This document shows, in pieces, positions 24,157 through 51,894 of a stretch of DNA of 64,000 nt. Every line of letters starts with the position of its first letter. Position 1 is the first letter of the stretch. This DNA is from Blastocystis sp. Blastoise. Lineage: Eukaryota; Protista; Bigyra: Opalinata. The notes under the pieces were generated by a model. It was not told the origin of the DNA and did not search any database. It saw only the letters and a program-made list of their open reading frames with translations. Made by a program: the position numbers and the translations under genes. The stretch is taken from the NCBI GenBank assembly GCA_039096225.1, contig JBBPEB010000025.1, positions 372,001-436,000 of the forward strand. The letters run 5' to 3'.

Positions 24157-27100
24157 ATGTTAGATACTGAATCTCAATTAGCTAAAGAGAAATGTATCTG
24201 AATATGATTAAACTGTGTTATTCAATTTTTTAGATTTATTTACTTTTCAAGATGAGACGCAATTGTGGATTTCTAAAGAATTCATTGAGAAATATCGTCA
24301 ATTATCCTTTTATGATATCATTGAACACTCTGAAGAATATGAGGATGGTAGTTATTATATAGATATGCCTTCATTAGGCATGAAGAAAGTGATTCAATTT
24401 CTAATGGAAGGTAATATGGATATTGAATCATTAGATTTGAAAGATAGTTATGATATATATAAAACACTTTTTGAATACTCAGTTACGATCGATAAAGAAA
24501 TTCAAAGTGATTTATTATTTCATATAGAAGAATTATTCTATAAATATTTGAAAAATAATAATTGTCATGTAGATAGATATCGTTATAACTATGTCAAATC
24601 ATATATGCCTATGGATTTATTTGATTTCAATAGGACATCAGTATGTATAAGAGGTAATTCTATGATTATTATTTATAAATAATATTATATATATAGGATT
24701 ATTTACCCCTCAACGAAAAGATGAATTATTATATTATTATCTTCTTATTAGAATGATGAATATTACTAAAGTTGAACTTGAATATAATTATTCTTCGAAT
24801 ATTCCATTAGAATATATATGCCCATCGTGTATTAAAGATATATTCCCATCATTAGAAGAATTAAAGATAACTGTAACAACGCATTATAAGAAGACTGAAT
24901 TATTATTGAATTCAAATAGTGATGAATATATAATGGAATATAATCGGTTATTTAATAAATATGATTATAAAATAGGTCATCCTGAAATATATGAATATTA
25001 CACTGAATCAGAAATGAATGAATATAATAAGATTTCTTCTTTAGACCTGAATAAATTATATTATTCTCAGAATATGATTGATTCCTATAATGAGAAAAGA
25101 GAAAAGAATGAATTACCTAAATTATATAGATATGTCGTTAATGAAGCTATATATACAAATGATTATTCAAAAGTAGAAACTAATGAAATAGAAGATGAAT
25201 ATACATTAAATGATAAAGTCAGTATTAAATATGATGGTATATATTTATATTAAAAAATCATATATTTTATTATTATTATATATAGATAAAACAAATGATA
25301 AAACTTTCTCGTAAATAATTATATTATTTTTATTATACATTTTATTCTGATACATTAAATAGTATTCATGAAGTATCTACTGAACATGGTATATCTCAAT
25401 TATTACTTCTTCCTTCCTATTTGTGTATTTCAAAAATTGTTTTTTATGACTGTAAATAAATACATATATAATAAATATGTTAATTTATTTTAGATTGGGA
25501 TTTTGACTGTAATGTTATGGTTTTTATGAAATTATTTGAAGAAGGTGTTTTTGATTCTATAACTACGTTAAGTATTAAGTGGAGTATTTTCTTTTTGAAC
25601 TATTATTAATATATAATTCTGCATAGTTAAGAAATTAAGTAAACAAATTGATGAGAATTTATTTAACAAAATAATGACAACTCATATATTTCCTAATGTT
25701 ACTGAGATTATATATGATCATGATGATAATGGTATGCATATATATTTATGATTATTATTATTATTTATAGAATTATTCGAATTATCTTTAATAAAGAAAG
25801 AATGTTTCCCTAAATTACATATTATCAATTATGAAATAAAATTAAGTATATTTATATGTTAATAAAAAATTATTATTCTTAATTTAGCTACTGACAATTT
25901 TGATTCTCTATTTCCTGCTAGTTTAATATCTATGATTGATACTATTCGTATAAATGAAATTGATGATGATCAAGAAGAGGAAATATGTCTTCTATTAGAT
26001 GAAATAGCTTATACTCATTCAATTCATATTGATGCTCTTAGTATATATATATATTATATATATACATTTATTTTCATAATAATATATATAATTAGTTTTA
26101 TTTGTTTTTATATAGATGATTTTATTTATTATTTTCCACATTTAAAAGAATTATTAGAGAAAGATCTTGTTTCTATTGATAAACTTGAGATTTATTCTAC
26201 TCGTTCTGAAAACATAAAGAGATTAGATTCTATTGACAATTATAAGCACAGTATTAATAGTTTAGCTATATGGTTTTATGATGATGATGATGATAATGAT
26301 GATAATGATGATAATGATGATGATGATGATGATAATGATGATGATGATGATAATGATGATGATAATAATAATAATGATAATAATAATAATAATGATGATA
26401 ATGATGATGATAATAATAATAATGATGATGATGATAATAATGATGATAATGATGATGATAATAATAATAATGATGATGATGATAATAATAATGATGATAA
26501 TGATAATGATGATGATAATAATAATAATAATAATCGAGATGAAATTGATGCCAGAAATTCATTAGAAACATTCTTTAAGAGTAGTGTATTAGAACATTTA
26601 AATGAATTAACTGTTTCATTTGATGGGAATATAAGTATAGACTATTTAACATGGATATCAACTCTTTTTAATGACAATAAGTTTAATAATATTCAAAAAC
26701 TGACAATTTACTGTATATTCTATTATAAACATATGAATATATATAGTAAGTTTTATAAAAAAAGATTCATCATCTGAATATTTAAATGCATATAAAAATA
26801 TATTAGAGAAAATAATTTCAAAAGCTTCTATTGTTAATATAGTTTGTAATTATTTATATATATGTAATTATTTTGTTAATAAATAATTCATTCAATTAAT
26901 TTTTAATTACTATTATTATTAGTGTGCTATATGACTTTTATAAATCGATTAATTCCTAAAGGTTGTTTCCATAATACAACTCAATTAGATCTACGTATAT
27001 ATATTAAATGATATAATGTTTTACCTATAATATATTACGTTTCATCCTAATCTTTTTATGAATATTAATTTAGATATTAAGGATATACCAGATGATAATT

Positions 27101-27691
27101 TTTGTAAACTATATACTACAGATAATTTCCCTAAATTAAAATCTATCAAGATTTATAATGGTCTTGATGAATCGTGGGTTTATTTTATGAAAACAATTTG
27201 TAATTATATGAGTAATAATGACTTTCCATTATCATGTATTTTCCGATTAGGTATTATGTCATAAATAATATTATTCTACTCATATTCTTTAATATTGTTA
27301 TTCTATAGAATGGAAAAAGAGTTTTAATTTTGATGAATATATTTATAACCCAAATAATTCAATTCTTCGATGTAAATATGATACTAATTCATTTATAAAT
27401 ACATTTATTAGTAAAAAAGATCAAATGATAAGTACATTTGAGATAGAAACATTACTTGATTGTATAAATGAAAATAAAACTCAAAATATAAAAAGCTTAC
27501 AATTATATATTTATGATGAGGAACAATTATCAAAACTTATCAGTTTTATTATTAATGGAAAATTTCCTAAATTGAAAGAATTCTATTTTTGGTTAGGTTA
27601 TCATATTTATGAACAAAGGGATATATGTACACAACAATTAAATGATTCTTCGTTTATTCAAAACAATCACGTGGATTATGAATTTTTCTAA
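24157..27691 (+). CDS. BTB/POZ (KCTD-like) + divergent LRR solenoid protein, paralogue A, 13 introns
   Basis: Fourteen exons splice in frame from MLDTESQLAKEKYLFTFQDETQLW. BTB-like segment DGSYYIDM...VIQFL. LRR-like strands FPSLEELKITV, FDSITTLSIKW, FPNVTEIIY, FPKLHIINY, FNNIQKLTIY, FPKLKSIKIY, NIKSLQLYI, FPKLKEFYF. Internal Asp/Asn tract at 26279-26534. Confidence 0.75.
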
Positions 27692-29270
27692 TTATATTTA
27701 ATTCTTTTGTATATGTGATAATTTATATCTTATATTATTATATATTTTATAAATTTCTTCTTATTATTATTTTCAAGCATTGACGTTTCTATAATGTATT
27801 TATATATAATTTTATTAATACTCTTTCTTGTTTATTTGAGAATGAGAAACTACAAGTGATTAAATAAAATATAAACCTTTATAATATATATAAATAATAT
27901 ATATTATAGAATACCATATAATGTTTATTATGAATTTAACTTTATAGTTTTCATGAAGTTTAAACTTTATAAATATTTCTACATAATGATAATTAGTTGA
28001 ATAACATCTTCATATATAATTAAAATTGTTTTTAATATTTTAAAAATATAATATATAAAAGTGAATGACTTCTTGATAAACAATTTAATATATATTTTAA
28101 GATTATAAATAATACTTGTTTTTTTTTGTTTTATTTACTATTTTTATAAAACATTTTTTATACTTAGTAAAACAGTTCTTCAACAAATGTTCTAAAATAA
28201 TTAAAACACATATTTTAATGAAATACTTTTTTCACTTTCAATATATAATAGTTTATAAAGAAATATCAGTATAGATAATTAAATAAAAATACAAATAAAT
28301 CTAATCATAATTACATTATTATATATTTGGAAGAAATCTATTTTTATCAAAATGCATTGAGAGTAATAAAATATTTTATGATTTAATTCTTATTAGATTA
28401 TAATATTAAATAATTAAACAAAGAATATAATATGAGAATTATGGACTAATCATAGGTAAAATATTATCATATTTAATTATTCATATATTTGCGTATTAAT
28501 ATATAAGCGAAACATATAAATAATATACATTTCTATTACCAATAATATATGTTGTATAAAATATCAAAAATAGTTGTTATTCATCATATATATATGATAA
28601 TATATTATCTATATGAATATGATGATTTTGATATCTTCATAAATTATTGTAAAAAAACTATGAAAATAAAATAATATAAAAAAGAAATGGAAGAGTGAGA
28701 AGAAGGAGATAGAAAGAACAGGAGTGATAATTTTATAAAGAGACTATAGAAGTAATTCAATCTGAGTAATAGAAATATATTATATAAATATAATATAAAA
28801 ATAAATAATAATGTATTAAATATAGTCAGAAATTAGGAATGATTACCAAAAGAATATAGTAATTCATTTCTAGATAAATAATAGTTAGCATATACAAACA
28901 TATAAATATATATAAATAAAAATAGAAACGTATATATTAAAAATAAGAGACTTATCAATCAAAATGTAAATGATGTAAGAAATATAAATTGATTAGACAT
29001 ACAAATCTGTTTGTAGTATCCTCTATATGTTTAATTAGTATTCAATACATTATTTTAAGTAAAATATTTAGCGAAGATCCACACTGAGTTACCTATTTTT
29101 GGAAATTATTGAGATATTTTTGTAGATCATATCTAATGTTAATTATTTTAAATATTATGAATAATTATATATGTATAATAAGCGAATAATAAAAGAAATA
29201 AAAGAATAATAAAAGAATAAAATAAACAAGGGGAAACAAATATATTTATTTCATTAGCATTATTTCATTA

Positions 29271-29920
29271 ATGGTGAAAGGAAAGGCTTTATTTGATATT
29301 GATAAGTTTAATAGATTGAATGAAGATATCAATGTATATGAAGAATTGATGAAAGATGTAGTTAATGTATTTGGATCAGTAATGAATCTTGGTATACATT
29401 CTTTAATATCGATTAATAGACTTATAAAGAATATTGGTGATGATTGTATAGAAAAAGAAGGTGAAAATAATAAATTTGAAAACAAATCTGTTTATGAAAG
29501 TAATAATAATGTAGATAAGAATATAAATATGAATAATGATAATGATAATGATATGGATTTGATTCAATTTACGAATAATGGTCCTGTATTTCAAGTATCG
29601 AAATCAGTTTTAGATTCTTTAAGAGGTTCTTTTATTGAAGAGCAACGTGAAGAAGAATATAGAACAAATGATGGATCTATATATCTTGATTATAGAGGAA
29701 ATGATGCTTTTATTTATTATTTATTAGACTATTTGAATGGAAAGAAAGTATATTTTGATTCTTTTTGTTATGAAGAACAATTAGAATTATTAGATTTATT
29801 TGAATATTGTAATTGATCTCTTCCTATAGAATTACTAAATTGTAGGATAAGAAGAGATACTAAAAAGAAGAAATATGAAGAAAGCGATGAAGTTTCTTTG
29901 ATTATTAATGGAAGAAAATA
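29271..29920 (+). pseudogene. Truncated BTB-TLDc paralogue (nonsense codon plus deletion of the TLDc domain)
   Basis: Closely similar to 50362-51000. In-frame TGA at 29814-29816 where the intact copy has TTA. After ~29919 the sequence switches to similarity with ~52350 onward, implying a ~1.35-kb deletion. Confidence 0.85.
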
Positions 29921-30541
29921 TAATACATATAGAATTATGATGAATAATATTATTGTTTTATCTATACATATCACAAATTAATAAAAGTTAAGAGTATTAT
30001 CTAATTTATTTTGATTTATTATTCATTGAATCATAATATATATTCACATGATGAATTATGAAGAATGATTTATATAATAGAATTCTTATATTACTACCCA
30101 TCAGTATAAATAATTCAAAGTATTCCTTATCCTGTTTTATTTGACATTTATTCTATACTTTTGAAATTGATCATTTCTTAACGTTATGAATAATATTGAC
30201 TTATTATAGGTCGTCTATATATAAAAATAAACAAATACATTTTTATTTTAAAACAACATTTTTAACGATAATTCATTATAAACCTATATATATACTTTTA
30301 TAAAGACACTTGAGTAAAAACTGTAGTTAATTCTCAGTTCTTATAATGTTTTAACTAAAATAAATTTATTTTATAAATGAGTTGACAATAAGTATAAGAA
30401 ATACAATACATGTAGAGAAACAAAAGGCAAACAAAACAAGTAACTATTTGATACATTCAACTATGAAATAAGATAATATACACTTATCATATGATAATGA
30501 TTGATTTATAAAATAGATAGAAGAGACCTTGAGTATCTCAT

Positions 30542-44838: not shown

Positions 44839-47307
44839 ATGTCAACAACAGAATTTCAATTAACTGAAGAGAAATGTATTTGAATATTATTAATAATACC
44901 TTAATCTATTTTTAGATTTATTTACATTCCAAGATGAGACGCAATTGTGGATTCCAAAAGAATTTATTGAGAAGTATCCTCAATTTCCCTTTTATAATAT
45001 TATTGAGCACTCTGAGAAATATGATGATGGAAGTTATTATATAGATATGCTTCCTTTTCATATTGAACAAGTGATTTCTTTTTTAATGGAAGAAAACATG
45101 GATATTGATTCATTAGATTTGAAAGAAAGTTATGATATATATAAAACACTTTTTGAATACTCAGTTACGATCGATAAAGAAATTCAAAGTGATTTATTAT
45201 TTCATATAGAAGAATTATTCTATAAATATTTGAAAAATAATAATTGTCATGTAGATAGATATCGTTATAACTATGTCAAATCATATATGCCTATGGATTT
45301 ATTCAATTTAGAAGAGAAAAAAATATATTATGGTATATATATATTTATAATATTTATAATATATACATATATAGACTTATTTACATCAAAAAGAAAAAAT
45401 GAATTATTATATTATTCTCTTCTTATTAAAATGATGAATATTACTAAAGTTATAATTATATGTAAATATATATAATAATATAATATAAATAATAATATAT
45501 ATATAGATGATTATTCTTCGAATATTCCATTAGAATATATATGTCCATCGTGTATTAAAGATATATTCCCTTCATTAGAAAAATTAACAATTACTGGTAT
45601 ATATATAATTTTATAATAATAAATATACATATAGTAATTACACATTATAAGAAAACTGATGTATTGTTGAATCCAAATAGTGATGAATATATAATGGAAT
45701 ATATTCGCTTATTTAAAAAATATAACTATAAAATAGGTCATCCTGAAATATATGAATATTACACTAAATCAGAGATGAATGAATATAATAAGATTTCTTC
45801 TTTAGACCTGAATAAATTATATTATTCCCATGATTTGATCGATTCCTATAATGAAAGAAGAGAAAAGAATGAATTACCTAAATTATATAGATATGTCGTT
45901 AATGAAGCTATATATACAGATGATTATTCAAGTGTAGAAACTAATGAAGAAGGAGATGAATATACACTTGATGATGAAGTCATTATTATTTATGATGGTA
46001 TATATATACTATAGAATCATATATTTTATTATTATTATGTAGAAAAAACAAATGATAAAACATTCACGTAAATAATTATATATTATTTTATATTAATATA
46101 TAAATAGTATTGATAAAGTATATACTAAGCATTGTATATCTCAATTATTACTTCTTCCATCATATTTGTGTATTTCAAAAATCATTTTTGATGAATGTAT
46201 ATATATACATATATATATATATATATAATAATTTATTTTAGATTTATATAATCAAATTGATCCTATGTTTTTTATGAAATTATTTGAAGAAGGTGTTTTT
46301 GATTCATTAACTACATTCAGTATTAAGTGGAGTATTTTCTTTTTAAATTATTAATATTATCAATATTATAATTCTGCATAGTTAAAAGATTAGCAAATAA
46401 AATTGATGAGAATTTATTTAACAAAATAATGACAACACATGTATTTCCTAATGTTAGTGAACTAATTTATGGTGATTTTGATGATTATTATGATGATAAT
46501 GGTATATATATATATTTATTATTGTTATTATTATTTATAGAACATTTCCAATTATCTTTAATAAAGAAAGAATGCTTTCCCAAACTACATATTGTCAATT
46601 ACGACATTATAATAAGTATATTAATATATTAATAAATAAATTATTATTCTTAATTTAGCTACTGACAATTTTGATTCTCTATTTCCTGCTAGTTTAATAT
46701 CTATGATTGATACTATTCGTATAAATGAAATTGTTTTTGATCAAGAAGAAGAAATATGTCTTCTATTAGATGAAATAGCTTATACTCATTCAATTCATAT
46801 TGATATAAATGGTATAATTATGTGTATTATATAAATTTTTACATTTAAGAATATAATACTATATATATAATTTATTATATTTGTTTATTTATATATAGAT
46901 GATTTTATTTTTTTTCTCCCGCATCTAAAAGAGTTATTAGCCAAAAATCTTATTTTAAATGATTATTTTTATAGTATGAAATATTCTTTATTCTTTTGAT
47001 TGCTATTTTTTTTATATATATATTTTATATACTATTCTATAAAGTTGATTCTTCTCGTTCTGAAAATATTAATTTGTTTGAGTCTATTGAAAATAATAAT
47101 CAAAATATTGATAGTTTAGATATAATGTTTAATGGTATGTATAAAATATATTAATAAATACATGGTTGATATATAATATTAATAATACTTATTCATTTAT
47201 AGATGATGATGATGATTATTATTATGATGATTATTATTATGATAATAGTGATGATAATGATGATGATGATGATGATGATGATAAAGATAAAGATAAAGAT
47301 GATAATG

Positions 47308-47345
<38 letters not shown>

Positions 47346-48791
47346 CAACATAAAATTGATGTGAGAAATGCATTAGAAAGATTCTTAAATACTAATATAT
47401 TAAAACATTTGAATTATTTATATGTTTCATGTATATTCTTTCTTTAAATATATTATTATTCTATGTTTAATATCTATAGTTGATGATGATATAAGTATAG
47501 AATATTTAACATGGATATCAACTCTTTTTAATGATAATACGTTTAATACTATTCATAAATTAAGAATTAATTGTATATTATATTATAAAATAATGAATAT
47601 ATATATAGTATATTCTATCAAAGAAGATTCATCATCTGAATGTTTAACAGCATGTGAAAATATATTAGAGAAATTAACTTCTAAGGCTTCTATTGTTACA
47701 ATAAGAGGTAATTATTTATATAATTATTCTTTGTAAAGATAGTTTATTCACATATATTTAACTATTCGTTATAGATTGTACTGTGACTCTTTTAAATCGA
47801 TTAATTCCTAAAGGTTGTTTCCATAAAACAACTCAATTATTTCTAGGTAAATATATTAAATATACATATTATTTCAATTATAATATATTTTATATTTCAT
47901 TCAAATATTTTTTTATGAATATTAATTTAGAAGTTTATGATATGCCAAATGATAATTTTTGTAAACTATATACTACAAATAATTTCCCTCAATTAAAATC
48001 TATCAATATTTGTATATATTTTAATAATAATTTTTTTTCTCTATTATGAATCATATATATTTATGTAAAAATATTTCTTTATATAATAATTATTTTTATT
48101 AAATAATACATATATATATATATATAAACCTTACAATAGAAAATGGTGGTTAGATATTATTAAAACATTTTGTAGATTTATTAATAATAATGACTTTCCA
48201 TCTTCAAGTATTGTCCGATTAAGTGGTATATCATTAATAAAATGATCCTATTCATATTTATTAATATCGTTATTCTATAGAATATTATTATGATTCTGAT
48301 TATGATGAGTATTGTGTATATGACCCAAATTATTCTATTCTTCGATGTAAATATGATAGTAATTCATTTATAAATACAATTATTGGTACATATGGTATAT
48401 ATTTATATAATAACATATTATATATATAGATGAAACAATGAGTAAATATGAAATAGAAACATTATTTGATTGTATAAATGAAAATAAAACTCAAAATATA
48501 AGAAGCTTAAATTTATGTATATTAATATTTATTTTTTATAAGAAATTTCTTTTTTTATAGATATTTATGATGAGGAACAATTGTCAAAACTTATCAATTT
48601 TATTAATACTGGAAAATTTCCTAAATTGAAAACATTGAATTTTAGGTTAGGTATGTATATAGTTATTGAAATAATAATATTATATAGATGATGATATTTG
48701 TATACAAAGTGATATATATAAACAACAATTAAATGATTCTTCATTTATTCAGGAAAATCATATTAATTATGAATGTGATACATTTTATTAA
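44839..48791 (+). CDS. BTB/POZ + divergent LRR solenoid protein, paralogue B, 22 introns
   Basis: Starts MSTTEFQLTEEKYLFTFQDETQLW and is colinear with paralogue A throughout. It has all 13 of A's introns plus 9 more. The intron starting at 48012 has no in-frame AG acceptor, so the gene may be defective or the consensus may be in error. Confidence 0.7.
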
Positions 48792-50361
48792 TTCCTTTGT
48801 ATATATATATTTAAATCTTATATTATTATATTTTTTTTATCAATTTCTTGTCATTATTATTTTTTTATTTATTAACGTTTATATAAAGTATATATAAAAC
48901 TTTATTACTATTTCTTCATGGTTTATTTTAAAACATAAAAATATTAATGAATAAACAAAATATATTTCTTATAACATATATACATGACATACATATAATA
49001 GAATACTATTTAATGTGTATTATGAGTTTAATGTAAAGTATTTATGAAGTTTTAACTTTATAAATATTTCTACATAATGATAATTAGTTGCATAACATCT
49101 TCATATATAATTAAAATTGTTTTTAATATTTTAAAAATATAATATATAAAAGTGAATGACTTCTTGATAAACATTTTTATTAGTATATTAAGAAAATAAA
49201 TGAGATTTTAAATATTTTTGATGTTTTATTTATTATTTTTTATATAATATTTTAGTTTATATATAAAGAGTCGCTAAAAAGTGTTAAAAAAAAATTAAAA
49301 TGTATTATTTACTGAAATATATTTTTCATTTTCAATATAGAATAGTTTATAATGAAGTATTAGTTATATAATTAAATAAAAATACAAATAAATCTAATCA
49401 TAACTACATTATTATATATTTGGAAGAAATCTATTTTTATCAAAATGCATTGAGAGTAATAAAATATTTTATGATTTAATTCTTATTAGATTATAATATT
49501 AAATAATTAAACAAAGAATATAATATGAGAATTATGGACTAATCATAGGTAAAATATTATCATATTTAATTATTCATATATTTGCGTATTAATATATAAG
49601 CGAAACATATAAATAATATACATTTCTATTACCAATAATATATGTTGTATAAAATATCAAAAATAGTTGTTATTCATCATATATATATGATAATATATTA
49701 TCTATATGAATATGATGATTTTGATATCTTCATAAATTATTGTAAAAAAACTATGAAAATAAAATAATATAAAAAAGAAATGGAAGAGTGAGAAGAAGGA
49801 GATAGAAAGAACAGGAGTGATAATTTTATAAAGAGACTATAGAAGTAATTCAATCTGAGTAATAGAAATATATTATATAAATATAATATAAAAATAAATA
49901 ATACTTAGTAAATATAGTCAGAAATCAGGAAAGATTACCAAAAGAATAGAGCTATTCATTTCTAGATAAATAATAGTTAGCATATACAAACATATAAATA
50001 TATATAAATAAAAATAGAAACGTATATATTAAAAATAAGAGACTTATCAATCAAAATGTAAATGATGTAAGAAATATAAATTGATTAGACATACAAATCT
50101 GTTTGTAGTATCCTCTATATTTTTAATTAGTATTCAATACATTATTTTAAATTAAAAATGAAACGAAGATCCACAATGAGTTACCTATTTTTGGAAATTA
50201 TTGAGATATTTTTGTAGATCATATTTAATGTTAATTATTTTAAATATTATGAATAATTATATATGTATAATAAGCGAATAATAAAGAAATAAAAGAATAA
50301 TAAAAGAATAAAATAAACAAGGGGAAACAAATATATTTATTTCATTAGCATTATTTCATTA

Positions 50362-51894
50362 ATGGTGAAAGAAAAGGTATTATTTGATATTGATAAATTT
50401 AATAGATTGAAGGAAGATATCAATGTATATGAAGAATTGATGAAAGATGTAGTTAATGTATTTGGATCAGTAATGAATTTTGGTATACATTCTGGAATAT
50501 CGATGAATAGACTTATAAAATATATTAGAGATGATTGTATAGAAAAAGAAGATGAAAATAATGAATATGAAAAGAAATGTGTTTATGAAAGTAATAATAA
50601 TGAGAATATGAATATGAATTATAATAATAATGATAGTGATATGGATTTGATTCAATTTAAGAATAATGGTCCTATATTTCAAATATCGAAATCAGTTTTA
50701 GATTCTTTAAGAGGTTCTTTTATTGAAGAACAACGTGAAGAAGAATATAGAACAAATGATGGATATATATATCTTGATTATAGAGGAAATGATGCTTTTA
50801 TTTATTATTTATTAGATTATTTGAATGGAAAGAAAGTATATTTTGATTCTTTTTGTTATGAAGAACAATTAGAATTATTAGATTTATTTGAATTTTGTGG
50901 ATTACCTCTTCCTATGGAATTAATAGATTGTAAAGATCGAAATATGAAGAAATATGAAGAAAACGATGAAGTTTCTTTATTTATTAATGGAAAGAAAAAT
51001 GATATAATTAAAGAATATTTAATAAAGAATGACTTATGGAATACTTATGTAATGAATTATAATAATGGATTTATTAATTATAATCATATAGAAGATAGTT
51101 TATATATGGATGAGAAGTACAAATATATTTTATATATTACACAATATGTAAAGAATGGATATATAGATATAGAAGAAGATAAGATTATTGATATTGATAT
51201 AACACTATTAAAGAACGAAATGATTGAGTTATTTGGTAATCAAGGAAAAGAAGCTGTTAAAAAGCTAATTATGGGAATACCAAGTATATTTATAAACTCA
51301 AAAATAATTGAAAAGAAATGTTTTGAAACTCCTTTAGTAAATTGGCTTGGTACAGAAAAGAAATGGAAATTATTATTTAGAGCAAGTGAACATAATTATT
51401 CTTCCCAAGAATTCCATAAATATTGTGACAATAAAGGAGAAACAGTGATTCTAATTAAACATATAGGTCATAATAATCATATTAATATATTTGGAGGATA
51501 TACAGATCAAAATTGGGATAGTAATAGTTGTATATATATTATTATATACATACATAATTATTTTATATTCTTCTTTATAGATAATAAATATCGTTCTAAA
51601 GAGTTTCTATTTACTTTAACTAATGAACATAATATTCCTCCTACGCAATATCCACATGATGGAAATAATAATGGTATATATTGTTCTTCTTCTTATGGTC
51701 CTGTATTTGGTGATGGTTCTGATATATTAATAGGTGATAATTGTCATACTACTGATGATAATGCATGGACTGTTTCACAATCATTTACAACTGTGAATAC
51801 TCCTCAGAAATCATCCTTATTTGTGAATACTGATAATGCTAATTCTACTAATCACTTTATAGTAGAAGATTATGAAGTATGGGGAAGAATTTAA
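50362..51894 (+). CDS. BTB/POZ-like x2 + TLDc domain protein (~493 aa after removing the in-frame 51-nt intron 51530-51580)
   Basis: BTB-like segment DGYIYLDY...LLDYLNG...LFEFCGLP. TLDc motifs WKLLFRASEH, FHKYCDNKGETVILIK, IFGGYT, FLFTL, YGPVFG, VEDYEVW. Confidence 0.88.
   Translation: MVKEKVLFDIDKFNRLKEDINVYEELMKDVVNVFGSVMNFGIHSGISMNRLIKYIRDDCIEKEDENNEYEKKCVYESNNNENMNMNYNNNDSDMDLIQFKNNGPIFQISKSVLDSLRGSFIEEQREEEYRTNDGYIYLDYRGNDAFIYYLLDYLNGKKVYFDSFCYEEQLELLDLFEFCGLPLPMELIDCKDRNMKKYEENDEVSLFINGKKNDIIKEYLIKNDLWNTYVMNYNNGFINYNHIEDSLYMDEKYKYILYITQYVKNGYIDIEEDKIIDIDITLLKNEMIELFGNQGKEAVKKLIMGIPSIFINSKIIEKKCFETPLVNWLGTEKKWKLLFRASEHNYSSQEFHKYCDNKGETVILIKHIGHNNHINIFGGYTDQNWDSNSCIYIIIYIHNYFIFFFIDNKYRSKEFLFTLTNEHNIPPTQYPHDGNNNGIYCSSSYGPVFGDGSDILIGDNCHTTDDNAWTVSQSFTTVNTPQKSSLFVNTDNANSTNHFIVEDYEVWGRI

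Follow-up and report, generated by a model that had tools for sequence, protein, structure and literature searches.

Exact loss of nine introns from one member of a large, conversion-prone gene family in Blastocystis sp. Blastoise

Results

Two copies of a cassette

The window analysed here is a 64,000-nucleotide stretch of the genome of Blastocystis sp. Blastoise (assembly GCA_039096225.1, contig JBBPEB010000025.1, positions 372,001 to 436,000), and it carries two members of one gene family, copy A and copy B, which differ from each other by nine introns. The window is very AT-rich, with 13-29% G+C per 2-kb step, and its introns are tiny and of the GT-AG type, the host being eukaryotic. Upon comparing the window with itself, one finds a block of 5.8-6.2 kb in two copies, both on the forward strand (Table 1), whose gene bodies are 77-95% identical and whose 2.3-kb 3' flanks are 90.7% identical. 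The gene models of both copies were curated by hand, as searches for the fewest or the shortest introns mis-modelled AT-rich introns without in-frame stops. In the curated models, 13 introns are common to A and B in position and phase, nine are found in B only and none in A only. Namely, it is introns 3-4, 12-14, 18 and 20-22 of the 22 in B that are missing from A. An initial annotation of this DNA, made from the letters alone, had listed nine such introns in adjacent runs of two, three, one and three, the last three 3' introns included, with none private to A, and both the curated models and spliced alignment confirm this picture. The same annotation described the two genes as neighbouring close paralogues; they are indeed of one family, but their proteins are only 73% and their coding sequences 86% identical, and they are not sisters, so that 'close' says too much. 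Copy A is not a dead gene, since its frame is intact and its ratio of non-synonymous to synonymous substitution rates (dN/dS), 0.62-0.73, is like that of other family pairs.

Table 1. Coordinates of the features discussed in the text (positions of the window, except for L050). Lost introns are numbered by family position.
Feature	Coordinates	Strand	Remarks
Duplicated cassette, A side	24166..29925	+	gene plus 2.3 kb of 3' flank; self-comparison
Duplicated cassette, B side	44848..51004	+	self-comparison
Copy A	24157..27691	+	13 introns; intact 953-aa gene, no stops; curated model
Copy B	44839..48791	+	22 introns; 916 aa, no stops; NCBI locus WA158_004548 (P0062)
A introns 1-5	24194-24233, 24654-24696, 25237-25285, 25311-25362, 25452-25493	+	curated model
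A introns 6-9	25584-25626, 25732-25770, 25846-25887, 26041-26115	+	curated model
A introns 10-13	26713-26746, 26846-26922, 26995-27073, 27251-27308	+	curated model
B intron 3, absent from A	45462..45506	+	position 182; acceptor 45506 in NCBI model
B intron 4, absent from A	45597..45634	+	position 212; donor 45597 in NCBI model; exact intron annotated in L035
B intron 12, absent from A	46974..47044	+	position 537; acceptor 47044 in NCBI model; homologous 67-nt intron annotated in L038
B intron 13, absent from A	47135..47202	+	position 567; exact in NCBI model of B
B intron 14, absent from A	47431..47479	+	position 680; exact in NCBI model
B intron 18, absent from A	48012..48153	+	position 795; exact in NCBI model
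B intron 20, absent from A	48395..48429	+	position 864; exact in NCBI model
B intron 21, absent from A	48517..48560	+	position 893; exact in NCBI model
B intron 22, absent from A	48651..48687	+	position 923; exact in NCBI model
B-only blocks in the DNA alignment	45462-45506, 45596-45633, 46969-47039, 47431-47479, 48026-48140, 48389-48423, 48517-48560, 48652-48688		
A fused exon, junctions after 24783 and 24873	24783..24874	+	lost introns 182, 212
A junctions after 26190 and 26280	26190..26281	+	lost introns 537, 567
A junction of lost intron 680	26619..26620	+	exact
A junction of lost intron 795	27154..27155	+	exact
A last exon, junctions after 27419, 27506 and 27596	27419..27597	+	lost introns 864, 893, 923
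A tract identical to L041 (other contig)	24446..24738	+	293 nt exact; spans retained intron 24654-24696
A tract identical to L032 (other contig)	25568..25718		151 nt exact; spans retained intron
A tract shared with L038 alone	25965..26290	+	97-100% identical; keeps intron 26041-26115, lacks the next two
L050, second intron-poor member	G000:C29:629400-635233		lost 153,182 / 401,436,461 / 827,864,893,923; NCBI model P0001 agrees

The nine introns of copy B and the evidence for their splicing

A global DNA alignment of A and B contains eight blocks present in B only, 35-115 nt long, which agree with the segments of the initial annotation save for alignment slide. The ninth segment, 47135-47202, is masked in this alignment by a GAT/AAT low-complexity run, and was recovered both by spliced alignment and by aligning A with another family member, L038. 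B can be read through only if all nine segments are taken out, since the lengths of eight are not multiples of three and the 45-nt one holds an in-frame stop. As for intron 18, the donor at 48012 given in the initial annotation stands, but the acceptor near 48123 does not. Namely, the ancestral acceptor at approximately 48123-48124, an AG in five relatives, reads AT in B; among the alternatives, the AG at 48139 breaks the frame, and the AG at 48152-48153 keeps it and is the one used by the NCBI model. In that model intron 18 of B grows to 142 nt, at the cost of about 10 codons which B's 97% identical sister copy still encodes.

All 794 residues of the NCBI protein P0062 map onto copy B, and the underlying model contains six of the nine B-only introns exactly; for each of the remaining three it has a single boundary in common. 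The NCBI model of the sister copy, L035, has eight of the nine exactly, and the models of L038 and of L050, a further family member, splice these introns as well. Given that the organism is unicellular, any expression counts as germ-line transcription. According to the genome paper, poly(A) RNA sequencing (RNA-seq) data were generated for its isolates and gene models were chosen for introns supported by RNA-seq (PMC12129017). The NCBI model of B also omits three whole frame-neutral exons (45375-45461, 46541-46615 and 46899-46973), two of which adjoin B-only introns, and the model of the sister copy omits two of the same three; in addition, B's model uses a distant alternative acceptor at 45736, after the donor at 45597, and an alternative donor at 46170. 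The exons missing from B's model could mean that repeat units are skipped as cassette exons, or that the annotation pipeline chose this form.

The gene family

Both copies belong to a large gene family that is private to Blastocystis sp. Blastoise, an inhabitant of the tortoise gut, and has roughly 100 or more members. All 95 relatives found in the databases are named 'hypothetical protein WA158_... [Blastocystis sp. Blastoise]', no more than 27 family representatives occur among 1.84 billion proteins, and a single exon of A gives 178 exon-level matches within the genome. The products, about 900 aa long, consist of an N-terminal alpha/beta domain followed by about twenty repeat units of 25-40 aa. 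There are 22 tiny introns of 30-140 nt in the ancestral plan, 21 of them in phase 1, with the exception following a 25-nt micro-exon; except for the two terminal exons and the micro-exon pair (25 + 89 nt), all exon lengths are divisible by three, and so is the summed length of that pair. In other words, the ancestral gene plan with its 22 introns follows from one frame-neutral exon per repeat unit. Between family members dN/dS is 0.6-0.9, and we therefore regard this as a fast-evolving family of repeat proteins.

Zero Pfam matches were obtained for five exon translations. When the N-terminal 139 aa were tested for a BTB/POZ fold, Pfam again gave no match and a Foldseek search of the PDB none at E<=0.001, with BTB chains appearing only at E ~1; the language-model neighbours of this domain do include BTB clusters, at 0.88-0.91 only, and its AlphaFold model has a predicted local distance difference test score (pLDDT) of 66. 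A BTB-like nature of the domain is thus a weak lead only. In one annotated protein, P0002 (WA158_006655, 1174 aa), the family body continues into a tail that passes the membrane several times and matches Pfam PF10225; this tail may be a merged neighbouring gene.

The 3' flanks of A and B (27692-29925 and 48792-51004) recur at 77-95% identity behind L031, L032, L033, L035, L041, L047, L049 and L050, and the mobile or duplicating unit is therefore the cassette, not the gene alone. A 510-aa open reading frame (50362-51894) begins within the 3' flank of B, and the 5' flank of A is unlike that of B, matching that of L049 only.

Polarity of the differences

To score introns across the family, we used a protein-to-genome spliced aligner written for this analysis, with the protein of A as query. 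On copy B it returned 20 of the 22 hand-curated introns exactly; it read the in-frame 42-nt intron 2 as an insertion and placed one donor 3 nt off. The resulting matrix comprises 20 further full-length loci (L031-L050) and 8 partial ones, i.e. 30 scored genes including A and B. Of the 29 other members scored, at least 25 have each of the nine introns absent from A, with codon and phase unchanged; most of these introns occur in 27-29 members, while position 864 is occupied in 17 of 21 and the low-complexity position 567 in 25 of 28. What is more, the intron sequences can be aligned between members, including distant ones. In an unrooted maximum-likelihood tree, A falls within a well-supported clade of 10 members, on a branch of ordinary length, while the sister of B is not A but L035, which is 97% identical to B and lies 110 kb away on the same contig. 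Since the introns are near-universal in the family and A is nested in a supported clade, scoring on the gene tree polarises all nine differences as losses in the lineage of A. No intron gain was seen among the 30 family genes scored, and the term 'turnover' is therefore too broad for what is loss only.

Exactness of the junctions in copy A

At all nine junctions in A, the exon ends of the nearest intron-bearing paralogue are joined with no base added or lost, and the excess length in the spliced alignment is zero throughout. The codon colinearity that had been reported across these junctions thus holds to the base. Between the ends of the introns concerned there is no microhomology at five of the nine junctions, and 1-3 nt of it at the other four.

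Mosaic structure of copy A and two recent losses

Sequence comparison within the family shows A to be a mosaic, with short gene-conversion tracts drawn from several paralogues. Two of its tracts are identical to members on other contigs, L041 and L032, in surroundings that differ by 10-25%, which points to very recent ectopic gene conversion over short tracts at the level of DNA. Most of the introns that A retains have 97-100% identical counterparts in paralogues. In particular, intron 26846-26922 is 99% identical to that of L032, with flanking exons at 83%, and intron 26995-27073 is 97% identical to that of a paralogue, with flanking exons at 93%. That some introns are better conserved than their flanking exons, together with dN/dS of 0.6-0.9, suggests quick diversification of exons or patchy conversion.

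The most informative tract is the one that A shares with L038 alone, a private haplotype of these two genes which covers codons of about 490-567. Within it, the retained intron at position 512 (26041-26115) is the same in L038 at 74 of 75 bases, and the 90-nt exon of A between lost introns 537 and 567 (26191-26280) is 100% identical to the corresponding exon of L038. However, L038 has both of these introns, and they are annotated in its NCBI model. Genome-wide, no near-identical match to the 26190-26281 region of A was found besides L038. Because introns 537 and 567 are gone from A but kept by its near-identical counterpart, these two losses are A's own and recent. It also follows that A and B, the former being a conversion mosaic and not the closest relative of the latter, do not form a clean sister pair.

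Pattern of loss across the family and reverse transcriptases

Over the 30 genes, missing introns fall into 17 runs, as compared with 24.2 expected by shuffling (P=0.00025), and the clustering persists when A and L050 are set aside (P=0.0125). Lost introns are biased toward the 3' end: their mean ordinal is 14.3 of 22, where 11.5 would be expected (P=0.0013), and it is 14.4 if A is left out. Losses are bursty: A and L050 lost nine introns each, and the other full-length genes 0-3. Taken alone, L050 has a run pattern with P=0.03. Four of the nine introns lost by A and L050, respectively, are common to both sets, where approximately 3.7 would be expected, so that the overlap does not point to a shared event. 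Nor is A specially similar to L050 in the places where both lack the same introns. Contiguous DNA matches to the last exon of A reveal further members without 3' introns.

A search of the genome for reverse transcriptases returned 20 RVT_1 matches that pass the curated cut-off, and no fewer than 15 lie in stop-free frames of more than 1,000 aa. Some matches lie in open frames of 2,400-2,800 aa (e.g. C15:725695-747278, C10:55024-64433, C13:624268-633677 and C14:664277-682178), and the distance between several of them, about 8.6-10 kb, suggests that retroelements are arranged in tandem or in clusters.

Discussion

Our results describe recent, recurrent intron loss in a conversion-prone gene family, and in this sense they add to a known process an example that is new and cleaner than usual. 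We consider it probable that copy A lost its nine introns through several short-tract recombinations with complementary DNA (cDNA) made from spliced transcripts of the family, on top of frequent gene conversion at the level of DNA. In this mechanism, mRNA of a family member, spliced in full or in part, would be reverse-transcribed by one of the genome's retroelement enzymes, and the cDNA would then recombine with a chromosomal copy over short tracts, each event erasing one to three neighbouring introns. In parallel, DNA tracts of approximately 100-300 nt are exchanged between copies on different contigs, carrying their introns along and shuffling intron states among the copies. Models of loss via reverse transcription predict exact deletion, joint loss of neighbouring introns, a bias toward the 3' end and the presence of reverse transcriptase genes in the genome (PMC3652778). 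All four signatures of mRNA-mediated intron loss, as known from the Fink model (PMC3652778) and from Cryptococcus (PMC2395259), are also seen here. Among the work cited in PMC3652778 are yeast experiments that showed gene conversion by reverse transcripts. The initial annotation had read the A/B differences as the pattern expected from conversion by reverse-transcribed spliced mRNA and had spoken of very fast intron turnover. The former is backed by the clustering and the 3' bias across the family and by the reverse transcriptases, but not by the runs of A itself, while of the latter the speed finds an echo in the two recent losses, and the turnover does not.

That said, a number of observations speak against this interpretation and should be kept in mind. 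First, the four runs in A alone are not significant (P=0.13), and the tests across the family treat genes as independent, even though conversion and shared descent link them. Second, retained introns (711-768 and 827) lie 3' of lost ones, and a single poly(A)-primed cDNA is therefore insufficient, so that several events or patchy tracts are needed. Third, the recent tract shared with L038 keeps intron 512, so that either the template was only partly spliced, or a conversion at the DNA level came first and two losses soon after. Furthermore, where introns are absent, above all in the 3' run, the state may in some cases have been inherited, or copied by DNA-level conversion, from intron-poor members. 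Outside A, 3-12 extra bases are found at or near a few junctions of lost introns, namely those of L032 at position 153, of L037 at 512 and 795, and of L039 and L040 at 827; these could be imprecise losses, i.e. genomic deletions, or ordinary indels in variable exon ends. Finally, copy A's own annotated protein was not found among the NCBI models, and we infer both the agency of cDNA and the number of separate events from the sequences.

Could the intron-less state have reached A by DNA-level spread alone? Intron-less segments may have been copied into A from intron-poor members, or A may once have been even poorer in introns and have regained some of them. We find this alternative rather unlikely as a full account. 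In its favour, conversion in the family is demonstrably frequent, with exact tracts of 293 and 151 nt running across retained introns, and most retained introns of A are nearly identical to those of paralogues. In addition, the best non-self match to the last exon of A (88%, on C33) is contiguous across positions 864 and 893, and several other members also lack 3' introns. However, spread of this kind merely shifts the primary loss to another copy, where exact removal would still be needed. At positions 537 and 567, moreover, the only close relative genome-wide has both introns, and A is not specially similar to L050 where the two lack the same introns. What is more, for introns 711 and 827 of A the sampled copies offer nothing near-identical: the best matches reach 86-89%, and those of the flanking exons 80-82%. 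These two introns therefore look like old residents.

Genomic deletion by end joining or replication slippage, with selection keeping the in-frame, exact outcomes, we consider less likely still. The microhomology at four of the nine junctions, the extra bases at some losses in other members and the tiny size of the introns, which small deletions could remove, would all agree with it. On the other hand, the junctions in A are exact in nine cases out of nine, five of them without any microhomology, and inexact in-frame deletions, which should be tolerable in a repeat protein, are not seen in A at all. Neither adjacency nor a 3' bias would be expected from independent deletions.

Intron gain in the lineage of B, for example through introner-like elements, with A in the ancestral state, can hardly be credited: the raw A/B difference would allow it, as would the unrooted tree by itself, with the root on A's branch, but the same alignable introns occur in nearly all 29 other members, whichever side of a supported split these fall on. 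Besides, the branch of A is not unusually long, and three intron-rich copies have tracts in common with A at 97-100% identity. It is just as improbable that A is a mis-assembly or a cDNA contaminant, in favour of which we found nothing, since its lost introns alternate with 13 that remain, and since it sits within a 5.8-kb block that is colinear with B, 2.3 kb of flank included, and lies on an 874-kb contig of a long-read/Hi-C assembly (PMC12129017).

Returning to recombination with cDNA, it is instructive to compare the present case with known systems. Reverse-transcript-mediated gene conversion was reportedly shown experimentally in yeast by Derr, Strathern and Garfinkel in 1991 and by Derr and Strathern in 1993. 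In both settings the removal of an intron is put down to recombination of cDNA with a chromosomal homologue; the yeast work, however, was done in the laboratory and drew its enzyme from a Ty element, whereas here the process would be a natural one, inferred from its traces, in which the template could be the transcript of a paralogue. In contrast to studies of the Fink model, our evidence comes from paralogues within one genome and not from orthologues, two of the losses are embedded in a 97-100% identical tract, and losses are interleaved with frequent DNA-level conversion. As in the 'internal loss by recombination' described in Cryptococcus (PMC2395259), internal runs were lost here and introns further 3' kept. 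A processed retrogene or pseudogene would also originate from reverse-transcribed spliced mRNA, but A is intact, has 13 introns and stays in its cassette. We rejected this identity for A on account of the retained introns and of its 3' flank, homologous to that of B over 2.3 kb and to the flanks of other members. Introner- or transposon-driven gain (PMC9860276) can produce presence/absence differences between close copies too, yet the polarity here is that of loss, and the introns are old and conserved in position. Gain of the introner type was accordingly rejected as a candidate, the presence state being found in nearly all 29 other members and the introns being alignable between distant ones.

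A bolder reading, which we put forward tentatively and regard as possible at most, is that in this Blastocystis lineage an unusually active route of cDNA recombination erases introns within the time in which paralogous tracts diverge by 0-3%, and that the transcript of a paralogue, possibly partly spliced, can serve as its template. If this were true, the exon of A at 26191-26280 would, together with both of its junctions, have been written in one step from an RNA like that of L038, i.e. by natural RNA-mediated ectopic gene conversion, and the family would be a rare system for catching intron loss in progress.

Regardless of the exact route, paralogue-based gene models in this genome cannot assume a conserved intron structure, which should serve as a warning for its annotation. 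What is more, a single genome here holds some 100 copies or more, all built on one 22-intron plan, with dozens of exact losses. The rate of loss, the length of tracts, the proportion of exact to inexact events and the way these events interact with ordinary gene conversion can thus all be counted in one data set. The case also bears on why intron content and size vary so widely among Blastocystis genomes.

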